A stretch of DNA of 61,352 bases, filler included, from Syncephalis fuscata S228 (Eukaryota; Fungi; Zoopagomycota): NCBI GenBank assembly GCA_025786725.1. It is 3 parts of 3 records of this genome, joined end to end, with 100 filler letters (N's around TTAATTAATTAA, not from the genome) between each part and the next. Parts side by side here need not be neighbours in the genome. Positions count along the whole stretch, not along the records: positions 35,769 to 61,352 come from JAHLTZ010000118.1; 2 more parts are not named here. One strand, 5' to 3'. The notes under the pieces are model-generated. The model was given only the letters and a program-made list of their open reading frames with translations. It made no database searches and was not told the DNA's origin. Position 1 is the stretch's first letter. Each line of letters opens with the position of its first letter. Positions 37,260-55,569 of the stretch are shown here, in pieces. Both the position numbers and the translations under genes were made by a program.

Positions 37260-38218
37260 AACAATAATAATGATAATGAATTTTAACAAAAATCATATTT
37301 AATACTTGTAATTAATTGTAACACCTTTATTAATAGATTGATTTAGATAAAAGAATGTAACATACTATCTGATTTCATTGAAACATTTGAGGTTGATTAT
37401 TGTTGTTGTTGGCCATGTGTAGAAAGATTGTTCGAATATTAATAGAAGCCATATGGTTGCAATTCCATATCATTTCACAGTCGTTGTTATACTAATATAT
37501 CCATGCTATGTACCATTACATTTATAACAACTTTGACATTTATTGGTTGAGTTAAATAAACCGTATCATCATATAAAATATTGTATGTCATTTAACATTA
37601 TTATACAATATAATTGAAGCTATTACCCATTTAGTATGATTTGATGTTAAATGACTAGATTTAATAATATTTATTTTATTGAATATGGCGATGGATGGTG
37701 AGTGCCATTAAATATCCAATTATACTGATTTGAGTACTTACAGAAACAACACATGGATTAACATTATTATTACTATTATTTATCTATTTGTTATATTTTA
37801 ATAATGTTAAATACTGTTTAGCATTTATTAATACTAATATCGAATATTGAAAATAGTACAGACTGATTCATTCAAACTAATTCAAATGTAGCTGACATAG
37901 CACTGTTTCAACAAACAACAGTTCTTAGTGTTGAAAACTAATTGGCAGTTTTATTACTATTATTTTGTTAAAATGGAATTACAAGTTCATTATTATAAGC
38001 CTGCACAATCGAATAGGAGCAACCAATTGTAAACTTGTTAATAAAATAATAATTTTATTGATTAAAGTGCATAAACCGGAGCATTGGCCAGTAACTGGTA
38101 TGTAAGTCGACTGAACGGCGTAGTTGCTAGATGCTTTTGCTTTTGACGAATATATATCTAAAGTGATCGGGATAGCGGTTTGGTTGCACTACCAATGCTA
38201 ATGTCTTGAGATAATTGA

Positions 38219-38416
38219 TTATCCACAATAGTCGCGACAAGACTTATAACGACATTTGTCGTAGTCAAGCCTCCACCAACGAGTGCAGTCTTTAATGCAA
38301 GCTTTGCAATCCGCAGGCTTAATTAAAGATGGATCTGGGTTAGCGTCCACCATGGTGGTTGTAGTGGCTATCAAAGCCACAACGACGGTGCAAACGACGG
38401 CAATAGAAAGCTTCAT
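38219..38416 (-). CDS. Small secreted cysteine-rich peptide (65 aa; C-X2-C-X3-C-X10-C-X4-C-X3-C)
   Basis: Signal peptide ending VDA, cationic Trp-containing mature part, six Cys conserved in the paralog. Confidence 0.88.
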   Translation of the reverse strand: MKLSIAVVCTVVVALIATTTTMVDANPDPSLIKPADCKACIKDCTRWWRLDYDKCRYKSCRDYCG

Positions 38417-38702
38417 AGTGATATTAATTTGTTAAAACAAACAAATAAACCAGATAATAGATTGTGTGGTATAAAATGTATAGTAGTGTGTGTTTGGCAA
38501 GAAGTAGAGTGATGATGATATCGCAGTTGGTTGTGTATATTTTGTGGGCTATTTAAACTTATGGTTTACTGAGATGCTAGTATACTGTAGTATATGAGGT
38601 ACACTATTGATGTGTAATATGAGCCAATAGAGCAATCCAAATAATGGTTTAAGGTACACATGTCCAGTAGATTCAGGGTGTGATAGTGTGCTTCCTAGGC
38701 TT

Positions 38703-38786
38703 AATTTCAACTTGTTCTGTCTTGATTTAACCTGTCCGGTCTTGATTTTAACCTGTCTGGTCTTGATTTTAACCTGTCCGGTCTTT
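38703..38786. repeat. 20/21-bp tandem repeat GATTTTAACCTGTCCGGTCTT x4 upstream of the peptide gene
   Basis: Four units here, three in the duplicate at ~52921-52982. Confidence 0.85.
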
Positions 38787-40368
38787 ACTTCAATCTACCA
38801 GTCATGTACACAAATAACATAACAACGTTCATAATCCAGTACATATGTGATAAAAATAGTCATACTAGCCTGTATTTTTTGTTATACGATTTAGCTATTT
38901 GGTAAAAGCAGGTATATTGTTTGGCTTTGTAAAGCGATAATGATGTTTTGCTGCCATTTCCACTGATCTGGTCCTCAATATCTGCATACATACAAAAATA
39001 GCACCCAATACTGATACAAAACAAGTTTAATATATCAAACTGGTATTTTATACAGGTTTTACAGCCATACATGGGTCAGCCATGATTTTTAAATTATAAA
39101 TGTGTTGATTGGTACATGTATGCATTTCATTCGACACTATACCCATTTTATGGGGCAATAGTTGTTTCGAATTCACAAATGCATCGCATCCAGACATATC
39201 ATGCCACATGTGCAACTACGATCATTCAAACGACGGTTAATCTAAATTATCTGAAGCTGCCTATACAATAAGTACTGTTTGTAGGATGATGCACCATGAA
39301 ATTCTGAGCAATGAAACATTCCAACAAGTTATTTTTATCAGTTTTTCAGCTGTAGACTAATTGCATTGGTTAAATTATACGCAATGCGATATGTGGACAC
39401 TAAACTAGACGCTGTAGAAAGTCCTACCCAAATATCAGCAATTTCAAGTGCATAGTAGCTGTGGATTGTATATCAATTGGCAATCATCCAAGGCCTAAGT
39501 ACTGCTTACATTTCTGAAACCAACTCTGACAACAAGTTAAGCAAGATGGAGTGTAGAAGAACAAGCCGAAGCAGAACCAATAGGAAAACAATTAGAAGCT
39601 TGAAGGTTTACTGGTTTAACCTATAGCAAACCATTGTAGTTATGCTAAGCTGGACTGCGTTTATCATAAAGTTGACTGTTGCTGATGCAACCAGAACAGC
39701 AGCAACGTCAAATTGAGATAGCGCACAGAAAACAAAGAGTCATAAATAAAATTGAATCAATGAGTTTAGTTTGTAAATAGTTTATTATTGTCACTATAAT
39801 TTATAATCCTGGTTGTTTGTATAAATAAACATTTACAATCACGTTGTAGCTTCTTATATACTCATATGTGCACGACCACCAACTAAGCCAATTATTATAA
39901 AGCTTAATCTAATTATCTATCAGAGTAAGCAGCTAACATTATACATTATTGCAATAATAGAAAACAGATTAATTCTATTTATTGCCCATTAACAAAAGCT
40001 GTATAGCTATATTAAAATAAAACAAAACATTGGATTAAGCGAGTAATATTTATATGATCAAGCCATTTTTACTTTGACTCCCACATTTTGAGTTCTTAAA
40101 GTAAAATTCATTTCAATTTAAGTCGCACTATTATGCGCAACACAATTATATTGCTTCCTATTAAGTGTTGTTAATAGATTGATTTGAATAAAAAATGTAA
40201 CATACTAGTTGATTTCATTGAAACATTTGAGGCCGATTATTGTTATTGTTGGCCATGTGTAAAAAGATTGTTCGAATATTAATAAAAGTGAAACAGATGA
40301 AATAAAAAATGTAAAACAAACAATAGCTTCTATGGCTTAATTATTTTTGGTACCTTTATTGACTAATT

Positions 40369-41666
40369 ATGGCGACTAACAAGCTACAGAAAACACAGCT
40401 ACAACAATTATTGCGTCGATTAGTGCAATCGCCAGAAACATTCACTGCTGAACATGCGTATACAGCACTGACCGACATACTAAGTGGTAATGCAACACCA
40501 AGTCAAACGGCAGGTTTTCTTACGAGCTTGCGTGCCCATCAGCTCGACCATAAAGCGGATATTATAGCAGCGTGTGGCAAAGTACTGATTGAACAAGCGG
40601 GAAAAGTGCCACTTGCTGACTACGCTTTATCGGCCAACGATATTGTCGATATTGTTGGTACGGGTGGTGATGGTCACGACACGTTTAACGTATCTACTTC
40701 AGCGGGTATTGTTGCCGCGGCTGCCGGTGCTTGCGTGGCCAAGGTAAAAATAGCAACGTAGCGAATATACATTCGATGAACGGTAATAGCTAATTTTAAC
40801 TAATTTGGCTTTGTTTATGTGTGTGTGTGTGTGTGTGTATCACTAGCATGGTAATCGTGCCTCATCGTCGGCTTCTGGTTCGGCCGATTTACTAGAAGCG
40901 TTAGGTTGTCAGATTAGTAAATTGACACCTGAACTTGCTGCTCGTCTTTTGGCAGAAAATAACTACTGTTTTTTATTTGCGCAAACTTACCATCCAGCCA
41001 TGGCGCATGTGGCATCAGTGCGTAAGGAACTCGCCTTTCCTACAGTATTTAATCTGCTAGGACCGCTTATTAATCCGGCTCAGCCTAAACGAATAGTTGT
41101 AGGTGTAGCCGCTGCATCTTTAGGACCTACTATGCTTGAAGCATTGCGTATTGGTGGTGCAGAACGAGCATTGGTTGTTTGTGGTGAAGAAGAATTAGAC
41201 GAGGTAAGTAAATACGTTTATTATAATACGGCTAATTAATTTACTGCTATTATTAATGTATGTAGATTAGTACAGCTGGATATACGAATGTAAGTATTTA
41301 TAATCATATTTATTAACTGTGGTATTAATCAATTGGCTAATTAATTTTCATTATTAGGTGTGGCAATTACTAGATGGAAATGTAATGCATTTTAAACTTC
41401 ATCCTAATGATTTTGGATTATCAGTCCATCCACTGGATAAAATACGCGGTGGTGATTCACATCATAATGCTGCCATATTACGTGAAATATTGGCGGGTCA
41501 GCGAAAAGATGCCATCTTGGATTTTATTCTATTAAATGCCGCAGCACTACTGGTCGTTGCTGGTAAAGCCGCCGATTGGAAGGCTGGTGTAGCATTGGCT
41601 CGAGACGCGATTGAGTCAGGACGGGCCACACAAGTATTGGCACGGTTTGCAGCGGCTACGTCATAG
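40369..41666 (+). CDS. TRP4: Anthranilate phosphoribosyltransferase, 4 exons
   Basis: DIVGTGGDG.DTFNVST, KHGNRASSS.SGSADLLEALG, FNLLGPLINP and LDEIS motifs. Confidence 0.97.
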
Positions 41667-41886
41667 TTTTATTTTATAAAAAGCAATATGTTTGGTTAAA
41701 GTGGTCGAAATAAATAAATTAGTGCAGCTACTACGATGTAGTAATAATACAGCATAGAATAGGCTATGCAATGTTTATTAAAATTGTCGCTATATTAAAG
41801 AAATCAAAACTAATAATAAGCGCTAAAAATGAAATAAAAATAGAGTTAGATAATTAATTGGTATCGTGCTAATATTGCTATTCTTG

Positions 41887-44389
41887 CTATTCTTGCTGTT
41901 CATAGCTAGCCGATCGTTTACTCGATTCTGGTTTTGATCTTGTCTCGTTTACAGATTCCGATTCGATTACTTGAATTTCATCGGTAGCGGTAGTTTCAAA
42001 AGAGCGTTGTGTATTTAGCGGACGAATAAATGATAAAGCACTCAGATATTTTGTTTTACGGCTCGTTACACTATCACGTAGTCGTTGCCGTAAATTACCT
42101 GATGATGTCTGCTCTCCAGGTGTTGCTTCGTAGGCTGGTGGCGGTGCTTCCACAGTAGACACTGTAGCCATAGTAACTAACGAACGAGGACTATCTGGAT
42201 AACGAGACGGTGATAGCAAGTTCGATGCGGCTCGTTCACGCTCCTTTAATCGAACAGCCATATCCACGGCATTATCAAGTTCTTCTTCGTTAAGACAGGA
42301 CAGATTTGTATCAGTGACGGAGTAATACGCATTATGGGTGCCCAGATCCGTCCAAAGTGATATGTCAGAGTCACGATTCGCCTTTCTGCCCAGTGCAAAG
42401 TTAGAGGCAAAGGTTGGTCGATGTGTACGCTGTCCTTCACTGCTTCCAGAATTACTAAGACCGGATTTATTGCTACCTGTCGTGTTTTTAGCATTAAAAC
42501 GTTGTGTGCGCTTAGCAGATGGAGTTGATCGTTTATTGGCGGCAATAGTCATGGCGGCAGCTTCAGCCTTTCGCTGCTGTCGAACTGCTTCACCACGCAG
42601 CAATTGTTGTACAATAAGTGTCGATGCCACAACATCTAATAAAGTAATTAGTATTAGTTATACAACATTAAATGCATATATTCATTACTTACAGTCAACG
42701 CTGTAAAGCGCATTTGTGATATACGGTGGCATAGCTTGACTGACATAGAGTAGTGGGCAGAATACACTTGAGGCACAGGCACATACCAAATAAATAAGAC
42801 CATCTCGAGCTAGAGCATCGTAGACACGCGCAGCATTGCTGGCCATTGTGCATCGATGTCGCATCACCACGGCCAAGAAGAGGCCAGAGCATACAAGGTT
42901 ACTTAATACATCTATGACAATCTTGCTGTAAAATGTCTCGATACTAATACCAAATAGCATGTATGGTGCGAGACAGCCATCATTCGGTAGATGCTTTACA
43001 TCAAGCGCATATACCCGTACCGCATTATAAGTCAATAGTGCAACAACGACGATTTCCACGCCAATGCCTACAACGGCCACCCAGTAGGCACGCTTATGGC
43101 CATAATAGGCTTTAACCATAAGAATACCCGCCACAGCTCCGGTGCCCAAATAGCCGGTAACAAGTCCAATAGCGCGAATAACCTTACATGGCACAATTTG
43201 ATCTTCACTGTCGCCATCGCCCACAAGTAATTGCGGTATCAACGGTAAATGGGCCATTAATACACCCGCGGTCAGCATGACTAATAGCCAACGCGCAGGA
43301 TTTCCACGATCACGATTCAATAAGATCGACGAATTAATTGCATTACTTAGCGCAAAATAAAGCACAATACTAAGAATGCCACGACTTATCATACGGCCGA
43401 CAAAGCGATCACGTTCGCTTGCTATATACCAGCGTTCATTGGTGGCCGAGAAAGAGAAGAAATCTGGCTCTGGTTCAAGTTGTGTATCAACCGGCGCTAG
43501 ATTGGTACAAGCATGGACAACTTGCGGCTCATTCTGGCGGTGAAGTGCTAATGAGAAATTAACAAAGGCACGCGCTCCTTGCCGTGTCTCCAGACGTGGA
43601 TGCAAACTGAGTGTCAGCTTGGGCAAAGTAAGATTGGCAATAGGTGGCTGTAGTGTGGCATTCAAAGAGGCTAATCCGTAAATAACACGACAGCAATCAG
43701 TTAGCATATAGCCAAAAATAGCTAGTTTATATCGACTTACCTGATAGATCACCCAGCATACAGGAACCAAAATGGCCAGGGAAGCATTTGTACCGTGTAG
43801 ACGACTCCGATGAGGACACAACAGGTGGACGTGAAACAGTCCGCCATGTATTAACAATATTCTCTCTATCTGGTACAAAATCCGTGGCTTTAAACGGCTT
43901 GCCATCATCGGGCATGCCATCCCAAGCATTCAACGAGGCCAGACTAACGATAGGTGCCTCGCCTGTACCCGCCGGAATAACTTGTTGTGGCTGATTAGGA
44001 TAACGAAAGTCTGGATCGTAGACTCGATTAATGTGTTGGCAGTAACCAACTGAAGTGGTGTTGCTGGTACCGGCTACACCCGCCGACAAGTCAATGCTGT
44101 CAGAAAGTGCATTTTCGTGCAACTTTATCAAATACACTGCCCGATCATTAGGATCAATTCGCCGGCTACTGATGTACACTCGACCATAAGGCAAGCTGCC
44201 ACCTGAATAAAAGGTAACTGTCACATCCATGGTAGGCGTACGTAGACGACCGCGGATTGCATCTAATGGTTCTAGACCGCTTCGCAACGGTATTGCCACT
44301 CTAACACCCGAAGTCGAAAAGTCTGCATTGACACATTGAACATCAATATGCAATACAATGAATAATATTATACTAAGAAAATAAAGCAT
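41887..44389 (-). CDS. Signal peptide + extracellular domain + seven-transmembrane (GPCR-like) protein, 3 exons (44389-43741, 43670-42693, 42635-41887)
   Basis: Spliced frame is open; seven hydrophobic segments, Cys before TM3 and in loop 2, LARDGLIY before TM6, Ser-rich tail with PPAY; start codon uncertain. Confidence 0.78.
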
Positions 44390-45095
44390 GTTGACTTTTA
44401 CACCATGAATGGGCATTCTATCTTGAATGTCCATTACGGCCAATCAACTAAATCTAATGGAGTTGAATGTATATTAAGGTGGAACAATAATAACAATAGT
44501 TATTTAACAAGCTAATAGACTATTTAACTCATTAATAGACCATAGATCATGTCCTTTGTCTGCACGTCTACACTATTATTACTACGATTAATAAACTACA
44601 CAATAACACTAGCAGTAACGCGATTAATGTACTATGCAAATAATAGGCACGAATAAATGGTGTTTGTATGAATTAATAGGACAAAATAAAACGAATGGAT
44701 GCCAGAACAAGGTGTGGCGGGCAATAAGATAGCATGTATTGTTTCGGTGTTTCATGAATAACTGAGCGGTGAAAAGAGAACTGGATTGTTATCTGCATGC
44801 GTCTCTCAATGGGTGCCATAGTGTAACCTCATTGTAGAAAGACAGCGCGGTCCGCATGGCAATGAACACGCGCATGCTAATAACAATGGCTGTGCTGTTG
44901 TTACAGCCCACCAATGACTATGGCGAATTGCATTTTAATTGGTAATACCGCGTGAATGCTTGGTTTCCCTGTCGCCTTTGGCTTTTTATCCACACAGTGT
45001 ACGTCATATTAGAGCCAATCTAGGCCAGAAAGAGGTGAGAGTAGATTTGATGTGGAATGGCAGCTACCATATCGATCCTGTATACTTTTTGCCCT

Positions 45096-45825
45096 TTATG
45101 ATGTCGATGTATGTCCTTTTGGAAAGGGCCGCACGGTCGAGGAGGCTAGAACAGCTTTGCGTCGTATCGTTATATGAATGGCCGAGTTGTGGCGTTCTTG
45201 TGCCTCTGGCATGCATTCCTAAATAAGACGAATAGTGTGTTAGTGCTTTTTATTGGTCTGGCTATTATTATTATTGGCCGTTGACTAAATCAATGTCACC
45301 TTGGCAGTTGTTGTGCCGAGTAAGAAATGCATTGGCGCCTACCTGATCTTTTGGATAAATATCATCGACTAGAGCGACAGTTGATGTAGTTGTTTGAAGG
45401 GATACTTGATGATGCATACTTGTTTCAATAGCCGTGGCCAGCTCAATGGCCCGGCCAATAGCTGCACCAAGTCCGTGAATAACAATAGTGTCGAATCTAT
45501 TGTCAAAGTGTTTATAATAAATATTAGAGTGCTATAGAATTATAATTATACATACTTTGCCTCGTTTGAAGCTAAAAGCTTTTTCGCACGTGCTAATTGG
45601 CCGTGGAATGAGCTTTTTCGCGTAACATAAATGTCGTTTGGTTTAGTTGCTGCTCTTTGTGGTGCTCGCTTGGCGATCCGACCTTGAGTTCCATTATTAG
45701 AACTGTTGTCGTGTCGCAGCTCACCATACTGTTAATGACTTACCTTGTATTGCGCGCTGTTGACGGGCAACTTGGCTAGTCCCCACGATCTTAAACGGAG
45801 TATTACTAGAGGATTGGGTACTCAT
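45096..45825 (-). CDS. POP7: RNase P/MRP subunit Pop7/Rpp20 (Alba fold), 4 exons
   Basis: Spliced frame gives KRAP, NDIYVTRKS, RAKKLL, IHGLGAAI.RAIELA, STVALVDD and RHNSAIHI. Confidence 0.92.
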
Positions 45826-46289
45826 TGTATAAAGTGCGTTACAAACAATACTGCGTAAAAAGTAAAAGTATAAAAAAATGGCGCTTCTTATCTTCAAAAA
45901 GCAAAGGCAATAATTTTAAAGAGTTTTCATAATTTTATGGATTTATTTTTCTTTACTGTTTATTATTTGTCATTCTTATTACACTCGTTGTGTTTTCTAT
46001 GAATATACTTGTCCTTATTGTTTGCTATCTATTCTTCTTATTACACTCATTGTTTTATTGATAAGATGTTTTATAATTATATTTGCTTTTATACTATTAA
46101 TTTTTATTCTTTCTTCTATTCCACCACTTGAACAATCCCCTCATCCACATTTCAATTTGCTCATAGCCTTTATATGTATAATGCCATTCAATTTATGACT
46201 TGTATTATCATATTATATATAGCATCTCATTTATTAATTAAATAAAAATAACCATTGTTTTTTGTATGTCAAACAATTTATTAGGCATT

Positions 46290-47135
46290 TAATGTGGTTT
46301 GTGTCAAATGACTAAATTTAATAACATTCGCCTAGTTGAACTACATTTTCCTTCTATTGAACATGGGGACAAGTGGTGAGTTTTATTTAATTGTCACATC
46401 ATCACATTGCTTTTTTGGGGACAAATGACTAATATTTAATGACGCCCAATCTATTGAACATGATGATGGGTGGTGAGTGACATCAGTCATCAAATACTCA
46501 TCATCATAGATTCGTTATCTAGTATGCATATATCCACCGTTTACCTATATCATTCCCATTCTGTCCCACACTACTATGTATCATTCTACGATACAATAGA
46601 CACATTTTATTGTTTATCTACACCAACACACTTTACTCATTCCACTCATTGCATTATATGCTTTCCACCGCACATTTATAATTTCATTTATCGTTCCATA
46701 CTCGTATAGTCTTCCTCTATTCAATGTTTTTTGTTTTTGTTCTAGCTTTATTATTAACAAATGTCGACTAATGTCGGTCATCTGTTTAATTACTTTAACA
46801 TTGCTAATCTCGTTCAATATTGTGTATTCATTATAATGTTTATCATTTTATTGTATATTGCCTATACGCTGTCTATAGTCGTTGTCGGTATGCTTCCAGT
46901 TCTTTTATGAATAAAAGTTAACATATCGCACTTAGTTTGTTCACTGAGGTATATTGGCTGAATAAATAATATGAATATGAACGAAGTTATGTTTTATTAA
47001 AAATATTTATAAATAAACTAGATTATGTCAATTAGTTATGATTTTAGTGTTAATCAAGCAAAGTGACGGGTCTACATAGTAATAACACATATTGTGATGA
47101 TATATGCGTACTGGATAATGAATCTATGATGATGC
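46290..47135. mobile_element. Second copy of the MITE-like element at 1704-2758, right end decayed
   Basis: 46305-46810 aligns to 1714-2290; inverted remnant at ~47100-47135. Confidence 0.7.
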
Positions 47136-47434
47136 AGTTTATTTAACTCAATTAACAAGTACTAAAAGTTAAAAGCTAAAAATGAAATGATACATAGCAT
47201 GTATATATTAAAGCAATAGCGAGAACTACGGAATAATATGGAATCGATCATATGACTTTTATTAATATTCAATCAATCTTCCTACACATGGTCAACAATG
47301 ATCGGTCTTGTTTCAAAAAAAATCAAATGATATGTTACACTATTTATTTAAAAGGCTACGGTTGCGTTTACTTTGCTCCCACATCTGTCCCCAAAGCGCA
47401 ATTTGTTTCAACTGAGGTTATGCTGTTGTTATAC

Positions 47435-47720
47435 GCAACATAATTATATTACTTCCTATTAAGTGTTGTTAATAAATTGATTTAGATAAAAGAATGTAAC
47501 ATACTATTTGATTTCATTGAAACGTTTTAGGCCGATTATTATTGTTGTTGGTCATGTGTAGAAAGATTGATCGAATATCAATAAAAGCCATATGGTTGCG
47601 ATTCCATGCCATTCTGCATTTGTTGTTATTGTATCTACGTGCAATGTAAATTATTGCACCTAAATGGTCTTTTCTATTTTCCAATATTCCACTATTGCAT
47701 TTTGGGCATATTTGTGATGT
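47435..47720. repeat. Dispersed repeat copy (family also at 21920, 37329, 40140 and inverted at 51335-51630, 54230-54450)
   Basis: CTTCCTATTAAGTGTTGTTAATA...ATTTCATTGAAAC...CATGTGTAGAAAGATTG shared. Confidence 0.85.
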
Positions 47721-48532
47721 AAGATCATGATTAATATAATTAATCCCTTAATTATTTCTAATAAAATTTAATAATTAACACAAGCTTAAAAAACAATACA
47801 TTTACTAATAAACATCACAACTATAACATAGCTTAATAATATAGACATTTTAATAAACTAATGTTTATTAATAAACAATTTACTTTTGCAGTGTCGTCTA
47901 AATCTGACAATTTATTGCTATTATTGTGTATAACGCGCTATAAGTGTCCAACTACTTAGCTACTAGACCACAAGTTAGTAGCAAGCAACCGATAATACAA
48001 TATCAATTATTTCTTTCATATCATCTACCCGCCCATCGGCCTCTATCCTGTTTGCTAAACTAAAAGCGTAACACTTCTATAACAAAATGGCTATCACATG
48101 GCCACTAGATTATAACTCTGCCACACCTAACGACAGTACAATTATTACCGCCGCATATGTCTTTTAGGTTACACCAAGAACATGTTCTGCAAAATTAACA
48201 CTAATAATGCTGAAACTGCAGTTGGCGTTAAAACAAACGTTTTTTTATTAAGAAGCAAATACAAACTACCAATGAAACAGCTATTACAAAGAAAAAAATA
48301 TGTAATTAACAATGTTCAGTTTGCAATGAACATTATTACAAGAAAATAAAGTGCAGTATAGGCAAATAATGAGTTAATTAATAAATAATTTTTAAATTTA
48401 AAAAACATTAAAAACGGTGGATTTTTAAAAAAATATATCATGGTGAAAGATTTATAAGTTTAAAACAATGTATTTTAGTAAATTCACCTTTATTAATCAA
48501 CCAATTAAATCATGGCAAACAATAACATCTTA

Positions 48533-50964
<2,432 letters not shown>

Positions 50965-51436
50965 ACTCAACTTTGTTTAAACAGCAATTACAACAGTAAA
51001 AACGACAGTAACAAAAGACCAATAAGTAGAAATAATAGCCGTAGCGGTTGGGGGAAGAAGAAGAATGGGTAGGGCACCATAGGCCAACCGTTTACTTACT
51101 TTTAGATATACGTCACCACGATGTATTGAACAAATGTGAGGTAGACTCAGCTAAATCAAAAACCATAGTTTTAATTCGGGTTGTCAGTCATTTCAGATAA
51201 TATGGTTTTGACACTGAATCACATGAGTCTACTATAAATCAATTAACATTAGGAAGCTATTATGCTTTTAACTTTCACATTTTTATTTATCCATTTCACC
51301 CTTCAACACTTTTGAATACAATTAAACATTTATTATCACAATAGCCCAAAATGCAATAGTAGAAGATTAGAAACTAGAAGAACCATTCAGATGCAACAAC
51401 AGATGTAGAATGGCCTAGAATTGCAATCATATGGTT

Positions 51437-54360
51437 TTTATTAATATTCGAACAATCTTTTACACATGGCCAACAACAATAATAATCGACCTCAAATGTT
51501 TCAATGAAATCAGATAGTATGTTACATTTTTTATTCAAATCAATCTATTAACAACACTTAATAGGAAGCAATATAATTGTGTTGCGCATAATAGTGCGAC
51601 TTTAATTGAAATGAATTTTACTTTAAGAACTCAAAATGTGGGAGTCAAAGTAAAAATGGCTTGATCATATAAATATTACTCGCTTAATCCAATGTTTGTT
51701 TTATTTTAATATAGCTATACAGCTTTTGTTAATGGGCAATAAATAGAATTAATCTGTTTTCTATTATTGCAATAATGTATAATGTTGGCTGCTTACTCTG
51801 ATAGATAATTAGATTAAGCCTTATAATAGTTGGCTTAGTTGGTGGTCGTGTACATGTGAGTATATAAGAAGCTACAACGTGATTGTAAATGTTTATTTAT
51901 ACAAACAACCAGGATTATAAATTATAGTGACAATAATAAACTATTTACAAACTAAACTCATTGATTCAATTTTATTTATGACTCTTTGTTTTCTGTGCGC
52001 TATCTCAATTTGACGTTGCTGCTGTTCTGGTTGCATCAGCAACAGTCGACTTTTTGATAAACGCAGTCCAGCTTAGCATAATTACAATGGTTTGCTATAG
52101 GTTAAACCAGTAAACCTTCAAGCTTCTAATTGTTTTCTATTGGTTCTGCTTCGGCTTGTTCTTCTACACTCCATCTTGCTTAACTTGTTGTCAGAGTTGG
52201 TTTCAGAAATGTAAGCAGTACTTAGGCTTGGATGATTGCCAATTGATATACAATCCACAGCTACTATGCACTTGAAATTGCTGATATTTGGGTAGGACTT
52301 TCTACAGCGTCTAGTTTAGTGTCCACATATCGCATTGCGTATAATTTAACCAATGCAATTAGTCTACAGCTGAAAACTGATAAAATAACTTGTTGGAATG
52401 TTTCATTGCTCAGAATTTCATGGTGCATCATCCTACAAACAGTACTTATGTATAGGCAGCTTCAGATAACTTAGATTAATGTCGTTTGAATGATCGTAGT
52501 TGCACATGTGGCATGATATGTCTGGATGCGATGCATTTGTGAATCGAAACAACTATTGCCCCATAAAATGGGTATAGTGTCGAATGAAATGCATACATGT
52601 ACCATCAAACACATTTATAATTAAAAATCATGGCTGACCCATGTATGGCTGTAAAACCTGTATAAATACCAGTTTGATATATTTAAACTTGTTTGTATCA
52701 GTATTGTGTGCTATTTTGTATGTATGCAGATATTGAGGACCAGATCAGTGGAAATGCAGCAAAACATCATTATCGCTTTACAAAGCCAAACAATATACCT
52801 GCTTTTACCAAATAGCTAAATCGTATAACAAAAAATACAGGCTAGTATGACTATTTTATCACATATGTACTGGATATGAACGGTTGTTGTTATTGTGTAC
52901 ATGACTGGTAGATTAAAGTAAAGACCAGACAAGTTAAAATCAAGACCGGACAGGTTAAATCAAGACCGAGCAAGTTGAAATTAAGCCTAGGAAGCACACT
53001 ATCACACCCTGAATCTACTGACATGTGTACCTTAACCATTATTTGGATTGCTCTATTGCTCATATTACACATCAATAGTGTACCTCTATACTACAGTATA
53101 CTAGCATCTCAGTAAACCATAAGTTTAATAGCCCACAAATATACACGACCAACTGCGATATCATCATCACTCTACTTCTTGCCAAACACACACTACTATA
53201 CATTTTATATCACACACTCTATTGCCTGCTTATTTGTTTGTTTTAACAATTATATCACTATGAAGCTTTCTATTGCCGTCGTTTGCACCGTCGTTGTGGC
53301 TTTGATAGCCACTACAACCACCATGGTGGATGCTAAACCAACCGCGGACATGGTGCTCCAGCTCTAGCTCTTATAGTCCTGCGGATTGCAGGTCTTGCGT
53401 TGATATATGCGCTCGTTGGCGGTGGGACAACGCAGCAAATGTCGTAAAGTGGAATGTAGCGGAATGGTGTGAAAAATAAATGATTTCAAGACATTAGCAT
53501 TGGTAGTGCAACCAAACCGCTATCCCGATCACTTTAGATATATATTCGTCAAAAGCAAAAGCATCTAGCAACTACGCCGTTCAGTCGACTTACATACCAG
53601 ATATTGGCCAATGCTCCGGTTTATGCACTTTAATCAATAAAATCATTATTTTATTAACAAGTTTACAATTGGTTGCTCCTATTCGATTGTGCAGGCTTAT
53701 AATAATGAACTTGTAATTCCATCTTAACAAAATAATAGTAATAAAACCGCCAATTAGTTTTCAACACTAAGAACTGTTATTTGTTGAAACAGTGCTATGT
53801 CAGCTACATTTGAATTAGTTTGAATAAATCAGTCTGTACTATTTTCAATATTCGATATTAGTATTAATAAATGCTATAATATTTAACATTATTAAAATAT
53901 AACAAATAGATAAATAATAGTAATAATAATGTTAATCCATGTGTTGTTTTTGTAAGTACTCAAATCAGTATAATTGGATATTTAATGGCACTCACCATCC
54001 ATCGCCATATTCAATAAAATAAATATTATTAAATCTAGTCATTTAACATCAAATCATACTAAATGGGTAATAGCTTCAATTATATTGTATAATAATGTTA
54101 AATGAATACAATATTTTATATGATGATACGGTTTATTTAACTCAACCAATAAATGTCAAAGTTGTTATAAATGTAATGGTACATAGCATGGATATATTGA
54201 TATAACAACGACGCGAAATGATATGGAATTGCAACCATATGGCTTCTATTAATATTCGAACAATCTTTCTACACATGGCCAACAACAACAATAATCAACC
54301 TCAAATGTTTCAATGAAATCAGATAGTATGTACATTCTTTTATCTAAATCAATCTATTAA
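51437..54360. repeat. Inverted copy of 37329-40287
   Basis: Reverse-complement match with scattered 1-bp deletions, many in homopolymers. Confidence 0.96.
53260..53479 (+). pseudogene. Second six-Cys secreted peptide gene; frameshifted as assembled (pseudogene or consensus error)
   Basis: Identical signal peptide; shifted frames give PADCRSCVDICARWRWDNA.KCRKVEC..WCEK-stop. Confidence 0.7.
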
Positions 54361-54915
54361 CAATATTTTAATAGGAAGCAATATAATTATGTTGTACATA
54401 GCAGCATGCCTTCAATTGGAACGAATTTTACTTTAAGAGCTTAAAATTGGGATCAAAATGTAATTGATCCATTTCAATGTGTTCCAATTCATATTTTTTG
54501 GTAATCATTTGGGCCAATGTTGTCTTGCTAGAGCCTGAACAGCCGATAGTTAAAATACATAGCGATGTATTACCCATTGTAACGACATTAGTAGCAATAA
54601 AGAGTAAATTGTAAAAGATAATTTAACTGGACTACTATTTTTAAATGATTAGATGGATATCGACTCATCGTGATAACAATGGATTTAACATTTATTGGTT
54701 AAAATATAAATGAATAACTTAGCAAAAATAATATCAAGCAATAAAAAGGAAACAGTTGAAAAATAGGCCCGCTAATATAGCTGTACAAGATACAATGGTA
54801 CAAATATTCACGCATTGTGAAGTAGTTAAAAACCAAAAATAATAAACTGCGGGGAGGTAATTGTATGTATCGACAGATTAAATTAAATTAACTTAAATTA
54901 ACTGGAAAAGGTAAC

Positions 54916-55569
54916 TCATAGATCGATGATACCTCGTAGATCGTAGGCCAGCTCGAGTTGCTCAAACCATAACGCCGTTTCTCGAGGTGATCGGAATCGA
55001 TAGACACATAAACGTGGATAATTACCAATAATCATGGGATATTCGTTTCTTAATTGACAATGAAGCTTTACAGCATGTTTAATGGCTGTTAAGCCTGAAA
55101 ACAATTTGAAGGGTCGACGGCGGCCAAATGAACACTTGAAAAACTTCTTTTTAAACAAAGAGCGGAAACTGCGCCATGCTGTACGACAGACTACATGTAA
55201 TAATGAGTAGTCGAGCCATATTAGCGTGTCGGCGCGTGTCCATAGGAGGGGACGCCAAGCATAAAAGTTGCCATGGGTCACCCAGCCGTCGTCGTGCGCG
55301 TCCAGAATCAACTGGACCTGTAGGGCAGTTTCCTCGGCGTATTGGCCGCGAGGGGTCTCCTCGGGGCAGATGGCACTAAGATCGATTTGCGGCTGACGCA
55401 GTAGCCGAGATAGGTTGCAGGCAAGCTTTTCCTTGCCGGCACATCCATTACCAACGATAATCATTCGACAAGGTGGCAGTTCATAGCTATAGGCATAGCT
55501 CATATTACCACAGCTGCCCTTTGATACATTGCTGTAGCGCGACTCGGCCGCGACAATAGGCAAAACCAT
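54916..55569 (-). CDS. FlaR/adenylate-kinase-like P-loop protein with degenerate Walker A, intronless
   Basis: RMIIVGNGCAGKE, GWVTHGNF, RADTLIWLDYS and FRSPRE..W motifs. Confidence 0.8.
   Translation of the reverse strand: MVLPIVAAESRYSNVSKGSCGNMSYAYSYELPPCRMIIVGNGCAGKEKLACNLSRLLRQPQIDLSAICPEETPRGQYAEETALQVQLILDAHDDGWVTHGNFYAWRPLLWTRADTLIWLDYSLLHVVCRTAWRSFRSLFKKKFFKCSFGRRRPFKLFSGLTAIKHAVKLHCQLRNEYPMIIGNYPRLCVYRFRSPRETALWFEQLELAYDLRGIIDL

Follow-up and report, generated by a model that had tools for sequence, protein, structure and literature searches.

A family of putative secreted peptides in Syncephalis fuscata with a conserved leader, shared flanks and hypervariable cores

The window (the whole stretch of DNA analyzed, 61,352 nucleotides of Syncephalis fuscata S228) holds two arms of ~3 kb, 37327–40300 and 51440–54370, that are inverted relative to each other rather than tandem and are 94.8% identical by BLAST over 2,989 columns, gaps counted. 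Each arm carries one copy of a small peptide gene. Copy 1 (38416–38219, minus strand) is an intact, unannotated ORF of 65 codons with six Cys, yet it is missing from the deposited proteome. The product of a neighbouring gene, P0018, is 100% identical to the window. The features are as follows.

37327–40300, minus strand: arm 1, which holds copy 1 and is otherwise without an ORF of note.
37960–38218, minus strand: 3′ UTR of copy 1, ~260 nt, family-conserved, with AATAAA and a 9-bp long-range helix.
38219–38221, minus strand: stop codon of copy 1, where family homology restarts.
38222–38341, minus strand: hypervariable core of copy 1, a short pro-segment without a dibasic site followed by a six-Cys mature peptide (C-x2-C-x3-C-x10-C-x4-C-x3-C).
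38342–38416, minus strand: putative signal-peptide leader of copy 1, 25 codons, starting MKLSIAVVCT and ending VDA.
38417–38650, minus strand: promoter and 5′ UTR block of copy 1, family-conserved.
40167–40330, strand unassigned: dispersed repeat of ~160 bp bounding the arms, with further copies at 37327–37490, 47466–47629, 51458–51559 and 54267–54368.
51440–54370, plus strand: arm 2, which holds copy 2 and carries about one derived 1-bp deletion per 100 bp.
53260–53334, plus strand: leader of copy 2, one synonymous change away from that of copy 1.
53335–53479, plus strand: core of copy 2, the homologue of the copy 1 core, 33% diverged and readable as separate frame pieces only.
53480–53738, plus strand: 3′ UTR of copy 2, conserved.

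The dispersed repeats may have mediated the duplication. A recent insertion of LTR type was considered and rejected, since the repeats bounding arm 1 are only 70% alike whereas the arms are ~98% alike, and a transposon origin of the 3-kb unit, with the gene as cargo, was dropped because the unit has no other ORF of ≥71 amino acids.

Read by eye, the copy 1 leader is a putative signal peptide with an n-region MK, a 15-residue hydrophobic core, and V-D-A at −3 to −1. The core has the paired C-x3-C motifs claimed by the initial annotation, namely C-IKD-C and C-RDY-C. Copy 1 contains no repeat and no dibasic site, and so has none of the repeated cores between KR/RR sites that serve as the criterion for KEPs (Kex2-processed repeat proteins). 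Both window copies are without the RR site that most of their relatives carry.

The initial annotation had described the two 3-kb copies as near-identical outside the mature region, with divergence concentrated in the stretch from the cleavage site to the stop codon, and our alignments bear this out. In the global arm alignment, substitutions reach 33 per 100 columns at 38220–38318 and 0–9 everywhere else, so that the uniform divergence named there as evidence to the contrary is not what the duplication displays. The core (38219–38341) has 40 substitutions at 122 aligned sites (33%) and 21 gap columns, in contrast to 62 substitutions at 2,747 sites in the flanks (2.3%, partly inflated where paired indels misalign; Fisher P = 8e-31). 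The signal-peptide coding part differs by one synonymous change in 25 codons. The divergent patch is not limited to the mature part but takes in the short pro-segment too. A breakdown by region, which the annotation had proposed, gave pN = 0.36 and dN/dS of ~1.5 for the core (30 codons; not significantly >1), and the core pS was itself 0.26, ~10 times the flank rate of 0.023 (P = 6e-4 if the flank rate is applied). Relaxed constraint on a pseudogene was rejected as the cause of the divergence because the neutral flanks have diverged by only 2.3%. We also rejected clusters of flank substitutions as relics of an old divergence, most of them being paired 1-bp indels, i.e., alignment artefacts.

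The window copies belong to a family of at least 15 genes, the other 13 being S. fuscata genes that encode “hypothetical proteins”. A word search returned four of these relatives, and a full HMMER profile scan of 1.84 billion representatives returned 13 true relatives (profile E-values from 4.5e-10 to 2e-4); tblastn located 12 leader-bearing genes in the family loci and the window. Several annotated relatives are frameshifted or mis-spliced gene models. The initial annotation had supposed an undescribed secreted-peptide family and had suggested listing its variants by their signal; done at the level of protein profiles, the listing agrees with that supposition, as the leader is conserved and the cores are hypervariable or unrelated. 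No Pfam family was matched above cut-off by copy 1, by its mature part or by six relatives (the best scores, 15 bits for Vanabin-2 and 16 bits for TIMELESS, fell short of cut-offs of 25), and no published description of the family was found in the literature searched.

The leader is 25–26 residues long, ends in VDA(K/N)P, has 19 invariant columns across five proteins, and is 71–91% identical across the family, where it is under purifying selection (pN = 0.11, pS = 0.30). Core identity is 18–52%, which makes the cores unalignable. The relatives share the common leader, mostly with RR at its end, in front of unrelated cores that have four to eight Cys or are Lys-rich and helical or Pro-rich; most have a single RR after the leader, and only P0013 has further KR sites. 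Copy 1, P0001 and P0007 have the motif PAxCxxCIxxC and six Cys in common, and the six-Cys framework, kept in these three and in the pieces of copy 2, is not family-wide. In four members a canonical intron (GTATGT...TACTAAC...AG) lies directly 3′ of the RR-Gly codons.

The DNA framing the core is conserved family-wide, with 75–85% identity in the 5′ block and 74–81% in the 3′ block. The 3′ UTR is 63–78% identical in six of the seven intron-less genes compared; that of L004 is 41–45% identical, and BLAST 3′ homology there is limited to a 57-nt stretch. RNAalifold predicts weak overall structure for the 3′ UTR (−16 kcal/mol), from which one helix alone stands out.

Against ten family genes in nine other loci (L001–L004 and L006–L010), the 5′ homology block of copy 1 ends at or within the leader (window 38332–38387), and 3′ homology restarts at 38222, at the stop codon, in the five genes with a 3′ UTR that BLAST matched to the window. 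Wherever a comparison extends to both flanks, DNA homology stops at or within the leader and restarts at the stop codon. The same pattern is visible in an independent tandem pair, L006a/b, in which 937 bp of 3′ flank are 98.9% identical from the stop codon, the leaders are 88% identical, and the cores are unalignable. Another S. fuscata pair, L003/L004, is uniformly 97–98% identical, without a hypervariable core, and core turnover is therefore not automatic after duplication. The sequences themselves show this anatomy, the family, its breakpoints and the contrast in rate between core and flanks.

As assembled, copy 2 is open for 35 codons up to an in-frame stop (53365–53367), with a terminal TAA at 53477–53479, and its Cys scaffold becomes visible only when at least three frame pieces are read separately. 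The claim that Cys spacing is kept in both copies thus stands for the intact ORF of copy 1, and for copy 2 across separate frame pieces only. A short intron restoring the frame was rejected, the sole GT...AG candidate being 24 nt long and its removal, as read from the sequence, missing the Cys frame. The frame breaks may be consensus errors, because the whole of arm 2 carries derived 1-bp deletions; copy 2 may also be a true pseudogene, because its core needs at least three frame changes vs. ~1.3 expected from the arm deletion rate. Were the arm 2 consensus poorly supported and mixed with reads from another paralogue, neither the divergence nor its location would be real. Such an assembly artefact would fit the one-base indels between the arms: of 26, 25 are deletions in copy 2, and of the 19 to which a polarity could be assigned, copy 2 has the derived state in 15. 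Another S. fuscata pair likewise differs by a 1-bp frameshift. We nevertheless consider it very unlikely: consensus errors here are deletions and not substitutions, 40 substitutions within 122 nt that leave the Cys codons conserved must derive from a real second gene, the adjacent single-copy gene is intact, and the same mosaic occurs at the clean L006 locus.

We think it probable that the family is restricted to S. fuscata and built on a shared frame, and that the hyperdivergence of the arm cores arose by ectopic recombination or gene conversion, with diversifying selection. The frame comprises a promoter and 5′ UTR of ~250 bp together, a putative signal peptide of 25–26 codons and a 3′ UTR of ~260 nt, and in most members a short pro-segment with Arg-Arg, a Kex2-type site, at its end. 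The core that it encloses, from leader to stop codon, is hypervariable among the members or has nothing in common between them. The sequence comparisons are best read as recombination or gene conversion in which the core was protected or replaced. Either conversion would have homogenised the flanks while selection kept the cores distinct, or a core would have been imported from another paralogue, the shared leader and 3′ UTR serving as homology; diversifying selection would act on top of this. The ~170 kb of S. fuscata DNA examined yielded no donor paralogue for such an import.

A young duplicate could instead have evolved in situ at an accelerated rate, by positive selection on point mutations and indels without recombination. 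This would agree with the two cores being each other's closest relatives (PADC, RW, KCR and Cys spacing in common), with the derived extra Thr codon in both leaders and with a dN/dS of ~1.5. Selection on the protein does not, however, raise synonymous divergence, and that of the core is far above the flank rate (0.26 vs. 0.023, P = 6e-4), so selection on a young duplicate is not enough. Furthermore, dN would be >20-fold the flank rate, which exceeds what is known for fast-evolving toxin families, and in-situ selection cannot account for unalignable cores beside a 98.9% identical flank in L006a/b. We therefore regard it as unlikely. Among the mechanisms that the initial annotation had offered, conversion of the flanks and cassette exchange gain from the core pS and from L006a/b, and selection alone does not.

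Secretion, processing, fold, recombination history and function are inferred for the family. The copy 1 product would be a secreted, cationic and aromatic-rich peptide, ~30 residues long, that has three disulfides and probably folds as a helix-turn-helix hairpin. AF2 modelled the 33-residue mature part with helices at residues 2–15 and 20–32 at low confidence (pLDDT = 67), and its model of all 65 residues was unusable (pLDDT = 58). The best structural neighbours of this low-confidence model are disulfide-stapled hairpin peptides (VIA-align: Wasabi receptor toxin, 6ofa, Z = 4.7; Luffin P1, 2l37, Z = 4.0; and vicilin-buried peptides); as Z < 5 falls inside the generic helical-hairpin range, these matches are at most a lead. 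Foldseek against the PDB gave no match, nor did a PDB sequence search, and the best result of the ESM Atlas feature search (0.78, eclosion hormone) was under the lead threshold. A disulfide-stapled helical hairpin is thus weakly modelled for the mature peptide. Alpha-hairpinins and CS-alpha/alpha peptides (Luffin P1, vicilin-buried peptides, BWI-2c, scorpion Wasabi receptor toxin) resemble it in having paired C-x3-C motifs on two antiparallel helices, which in copy 1 are modelled helices. They differ in having two disulfides, whereas copy 1 has six Cys (C-x2-C-x3-C ... C-x4-C-x3-C), and the plant members, unlike copy 1, are excised from vicilin precursors.

A conserved leader before hypervariable mature peptides, found here with leader pN = 0.11 and unalignable cores, is a likeness in how such families work and not a homology. 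Conotoxin gene superfamilies have a conserved signal, a hypervariable mature toxin whose Cys framework is kept within subgroups, synonymous and nonsynonymous rates both raised in the mature part, and an intron between leader and core in some members. They are unlike the S. fuscata family in sharing no sequence homology with it (Pfam negative) and in being animal toxins, the fungus having no venom apparatus; moreover, S. fuscata places cores of unrelated chemistry (Cys-rich, Lys-rich, Pro-rich) under one leader, and the 3′ UTR is shared too. In the amphibian preprodermaseptin-type families and the mussel MgCRP-I family (PMC4558851), the pre-pro region is conserved up to a basic processing site and is followed by hypervariable mature peptides. 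Those of MgCRP-I include six-Cys forms and those of frog skin are linear, amphipathic and cationic, the type that P0013 resembles; both are unrelated in lineage to the S. fuscata family and have no sequence similarity to it. KEPs (PMC6339444, PMC7329392) and the small secreted Cys-rich effector families of plant-pathogenic fungi likewise release small peptides by means of a signal peptide and dibasic processing, and are lineage-specific, fast-evolving and mostly of function not known, but the KEP definition does not extend to unrelated cores set in one frame of 5′ region, leader and 3′ UTR. No Syncephalis effector or toxin was found in the literature searched.

The same anatomy could also serve signalling or pheromone-like molecules, or RiPP-type precursors, that act on the fungus itself. 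Fungal pheromones and KEPs typically undergo Kex2-type RR processing (PMC6339444, PMC7329392). The internal KR sites of P0013 are in keeping with such a role, and so is the hypervariable-core layout with RiPP precursors. The MSDIN family consists of RiPP precursors with this layout. We hold this role to be decidedly unlikely: unrelated cores under one leader suit an arsenal better than a ligand–receptor system that needs matched receptors, no genes for modifying enzymes adjoin the loci examined, and copy 1 is without repeats.

Syncephalis fuscata is an obligate mycoparasite, and molecular work on such parasites within the Zoopagomycota has hardly begun. By analogy with families of the “one leader, many warheads” kind, and because of this way of life, the most likely targets of the peptides would lie outside the cell, in the host fungus or in microbes that compete with S. 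fuscata. The antimicrobial or effector role that the initial annotation had proposed is a candidate role. A bolder reading, which we find possible though doubtful, is a venom-like, recombination-driven arsenal in which one frame would be the landing pad for swapped, replaced or newly recruited cores, a new three-disulfide helical-hairpin scaffold included, used to attack or manipulate host fungi. The landing pad in that reading consists of the promoter, the leader exon with its Kex2 site, and the 3′ UTR with its conserved long-range helix.

Genes of this kind are under-annotated, copy 1 being unannotated and several relatives wrongly modelled. As a compact natural system within a small fungal genome, the family lends itself to asking whether hypervariable cores behind a conserved leader diversify by recombination or by selection. 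For fungus-on-fungus parasitism it supplies a concrete candidate arsenal that is easy to enumerate, and it may also yield new scaffolds for antifungal or antibacterial peptides.

The piece at 35769-61352 is AT-rich eukaryotic DNA (GC 27-46%) in which an inverted duplication lies among intron-split housekeeping genes, its arms set ~11 kb apart by unique DNA that itself carries genes:

37327-40300, arm 1 of the inverted duplication, holding copy 1
38219-38416, minus strand, copy 1: intact 65-codon ORF (ATG at 38416, stop codon at 38219-38221)
40369-41666, exons of an intron-split anthranilate phosphoribosyltransferase gene (housekeeping)
50671-50970, exon of an intron-split phosphoglucomutase gene (housekeeping)
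51440-54370, arm 2 of the inverted duplication, holding copy 2 (ATG at 53260)
54916-55569, minus strand, P-loop kinase gene

Outside S. fuscata, the kinase product is closest to S. pseudoplumigaleata (83%) and then Thamnocephalis (52%). A 414-codon ORF at 42685-44443 (minus strand) encodes a multi-pass membrane protein with 77% identity to a metagenome protein and 58% to Thamnocephalis; no S. fuscata protein was returned, and the gene seems to be absent from the deposited annotation or modelled differently there. A dispersed repeat of ~160 bp (37327-37490, 40167-40330, 47466-47629, 51458-51559, and 54267-54368) bounds both arms, has one copy between them, recurs elsewhere in S. fuscata, at the loci L002, L008, and L010, and may have mediated the duplication.

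The initial annotation had described near-identical copies of ~3 kb diverging only between signal peptide and stop codon, and comparison of the arms bears this out. The core, i.e., the part between signal-peptide end and stop codon (38219-38341), differs at 40 of 122 aligned sites and has a further 21 gap columns, against 62 substitutions in 2,747 flanking sites (2.3%; Fisher's exact test: P = 8e-31). Divergence along the duplication, a test set beforehand, was not uniform: the global alignment gives 0-9 substitutions per 100 columns along the arms but 33 at 38220-38318. Many of the flank "substitutions" stem from the alignment of paired 1-bp indels and are not real, so the true contrast is larger. 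The part coding for the signal peptide differs by one synonymous change in 25 codons. This local hyperdivergence of the core is real and far beyond chance. A separate 21-column gap between the arms arises because a 21-bp tandem repeat in the shared upstream region differs in copy number (4.1 copies at 38700-38785 in arm 1, 3.5 at 52913-52985 in arm 2).

Copy 1, the sole credible ORF of its 3-kb arm, has a predicted signal peptide with a hydrophobic core and V-D-A at -3 to -1 (judged by eye), followed by a short pro-segment and a cationic peptide rich in Trp and Tyr, its Cys arranged as C-x2-C-x3-C-x10-C-x4-C-x3-C. Copy 2, as assembled, meets a stop after 35 codons. A homologous Cys scaffold is present, but only across at least three further frame pieces, which were read and compared singly. 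Among 1-base indels between the arms, 25 of 26 are bases missing from copy 2, mostly within short homopolymer runs; with the paralogous upstream sequences of L002 and L009 as outgroups, 19 could be polarised, and for 15 of these the deletion in copy 2 is the derived state. Measured against arm 1 and the outgroup paralogues, arm 2 carries derived 1-bp deletions at a rate of ~1 per 100 bp, and the adjoining single-copy gene is intact; the arm looks like an under-polished consensus, a local polishing failure of the deposited assembly. At that rate the core of copy 2 would hold about 1.3 such deletions, and at least three frame changes are needed there, which makes consensus error a plausible source of the frame breaks; copy 2 could also be a true pseudogene. 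On either reading the second, diverged core is real, because deletion errors cannot make 40 substitutions that spare Cys codons.

A word search found four S. fuscata proteins with the same leader and gave no self-match, so copy 1 is missing from the deposited proteome. HMMER, with a profile of copy 1 and the family protein P0001 against all 1.84 billion representatives, recovered 13 true relatives, all of them S. fuscata "hypothetical proteins"; a 14th match, an unrelated repeat protein, was rejected. The leader starts with MKLSIAVVCT and ends with VDAKP, followed in most relatives by (A/T)L(V/T)RR, in which we take RR to be a Kex2-type dibasic site, by established fungal pro-protein processing. 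Beyond this, nothing is common to the members. P0001, P0007, and P0008 are six- or eight-Cys peptides, P0003 is a peptide with four Cys, and P0016 is a Pro-rich repeat protein. P0013, 111 residues long and rich in Lys and Ala, has KR sites in its interior and segments that look amphipathic. Copy 1 groups with P0001 and P0007, the three having PAxCxxCIxxC and six Cys in common. None of these proteins matched a Pfam family, and our literature search found no paper describing them. The secreted-peptide family is real and, as had been proposed, apparently undescribed.

Three members deserve separate mention. P0007 has Cys-Cys at its relatives' Arg-Arg processing site (L006:10073-10090; TGT TGT vs CGT CGT): through two C-to-T changes it lost the dibasic site and gained a pair of Cys. 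The annotated protein P0002 (84 aa) is P0003's frameshifted counterpart (L003:4211-4465 and L004:7065-7320 compared): one base missing after the leader turns the four-Cys peptide into a hydrophobic nonsense ORF, and both loci lie no more than 4-7 kb from contig ends within a 4.7-kb duplication that is 97-98% identical. P0013 (L008:6001-6336) adjoins two tandem M36 fungalysin metalloprotease genes (L008:6808-11327), an arrangement suggestive of a small gene cluster for secreted attack factors.

We compared the window with the DNA of nine other loci carrying ten family genes. Against all ten, 5′ homology gives out at the leader or within it (38332-38387), and in the five with a BLAST match of the 3′ UTR, homology restarts at the stop codon (38222). 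In the seven intron-less genes, identity is 71-91% in the leader, 63-78% in the first 200 nt of the 3′ UTR (41-45% for L004, whose BLAST homology there is only a 57-nt stretch), and 18-52% in the core, which is not alignable. Across the family, leader pN (0.11) is below pS (0.30), pointing to purifying selection on the leader as peptide, and UTR distances (0.22-0.37) approximate the leader synonymous distance, so the flanks show no exceptional conservation: in a family this young, it is the core that stands apart. Four members (L002, L007, L009, and L010) have a canonical GTATGT ... TACTAAC ... AG intron directly after the RR-Gly codons, making the leader a separate exon, and their conserved 3′ UTR lies 2-5 kb downstream. 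The interval before it is mostly an 81-bp minisatellite in L009 (Tandem Repeats Finder) and L002 (by eye), with ~38 copies at L009:7920-10963 (also L002:10080-13000) and stops in all frames; the short second exons of the deposited models P0004, P0010, and P0011 come from this region and look unreliable. The family 3′ UTR (37960-38221, minus strand) also contains a 9-bp long-range helix in which AGCATTGGT pairs with GCCAATGCT ~105 nt downstream (columns 23-31 with 138-146 of the 3′ UTR alignment). Seven members have it unchanged, and in L008 three compensatory double changes preserve the pairing; 3 of 500 shuffles reached such conservation, and the helix may be a functional RNA element.

Between the arms, the core has pS = 0.26 (4.2/16.3 sites), pN = 0.36, and dN/dS of ~1.5 (Nei-Gojobori, in-frame pieces). 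Selection on protein does not raise synonymous change, and core pS is ~10 times the flank rate (Poisson probability of at least four synonymous changes at that rate: 6e-4), so a young duplicate under positive selection alone is not enough. The cleanly assembled tandem pair L006a/L006b has 937 bp of 3′ flank 98.9% identical from the stop codon onward, leaders and 5′ UTRs 88% identical, and unalignable cores differing in length and Cys pattern. Segments of three different ages in one gene pair argue for recombination or gene conversion whose breakpoints lie where the core meets the shared leader and 3′ side. Among the mechanisms first suggested (strong selection, cassette exchange, and flank conversion), the recombinational ones are accordingly favoured over selection alone. 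Flank homogenisation is common between nearby inverted repeats, and it may recently have evened out the flanks of two old paralogous arms while selection held the cores apart. A recent 3-kb duplication also fits, if one copy later took up a related core from a third paralogue, with leader and 3′ UTR serving as homology. The first history is mildly favoured because the two cores are mutual nearest relatives among those readable here and both leaders have a derived extra Thr codon. In a third pair, L003/L004, identity is an even 97-98% throughout and the core is ordinary, so core turnover is episodic, not automatic.

AlphaFold2 modelled the full copy 1 precursor poorly (pLDDT 58); for the 33-residue mature part, aligned with two relatives, it gave helices at 2-15 and 20-32 (pLDDT 67). 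Foldseek returned no match. An exhaustive VIA-align search ranked helical hairpins stapled by disulfides first or nearly so: the scorpion Wasabi receptor toxin (Z = 4.7; 31 residues at rmsd 1.4), Luffin P1 (Z = 4.0), vicilin-buried peptides, BWI-2c, and Nigellin, with scores inside the range any helical hairpin reaches. The Cys spacing puts three Cys roughly along one face of each modelled helix, making a three-rung helical hairpin a reasonable but unproven model of the mature peptide.

One leader joined to Cys-rich, linear cationic, and Pro-rich cores matches the peptide-arsenal architecture of conotoxins and frog skin peptides, and likewise that of mussel MgCRP-I (PMC4558851). Obligate mycoparasitism is the lifestyle of Syncephalis species (PMC13188720, citing Benny et al. 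2016). A role in signalling or as RiPP precursors is the main functional rival; by analogy with the known arsenals, we infer that the family may be the peptide arsenal of an obligate parasite of other fungi.
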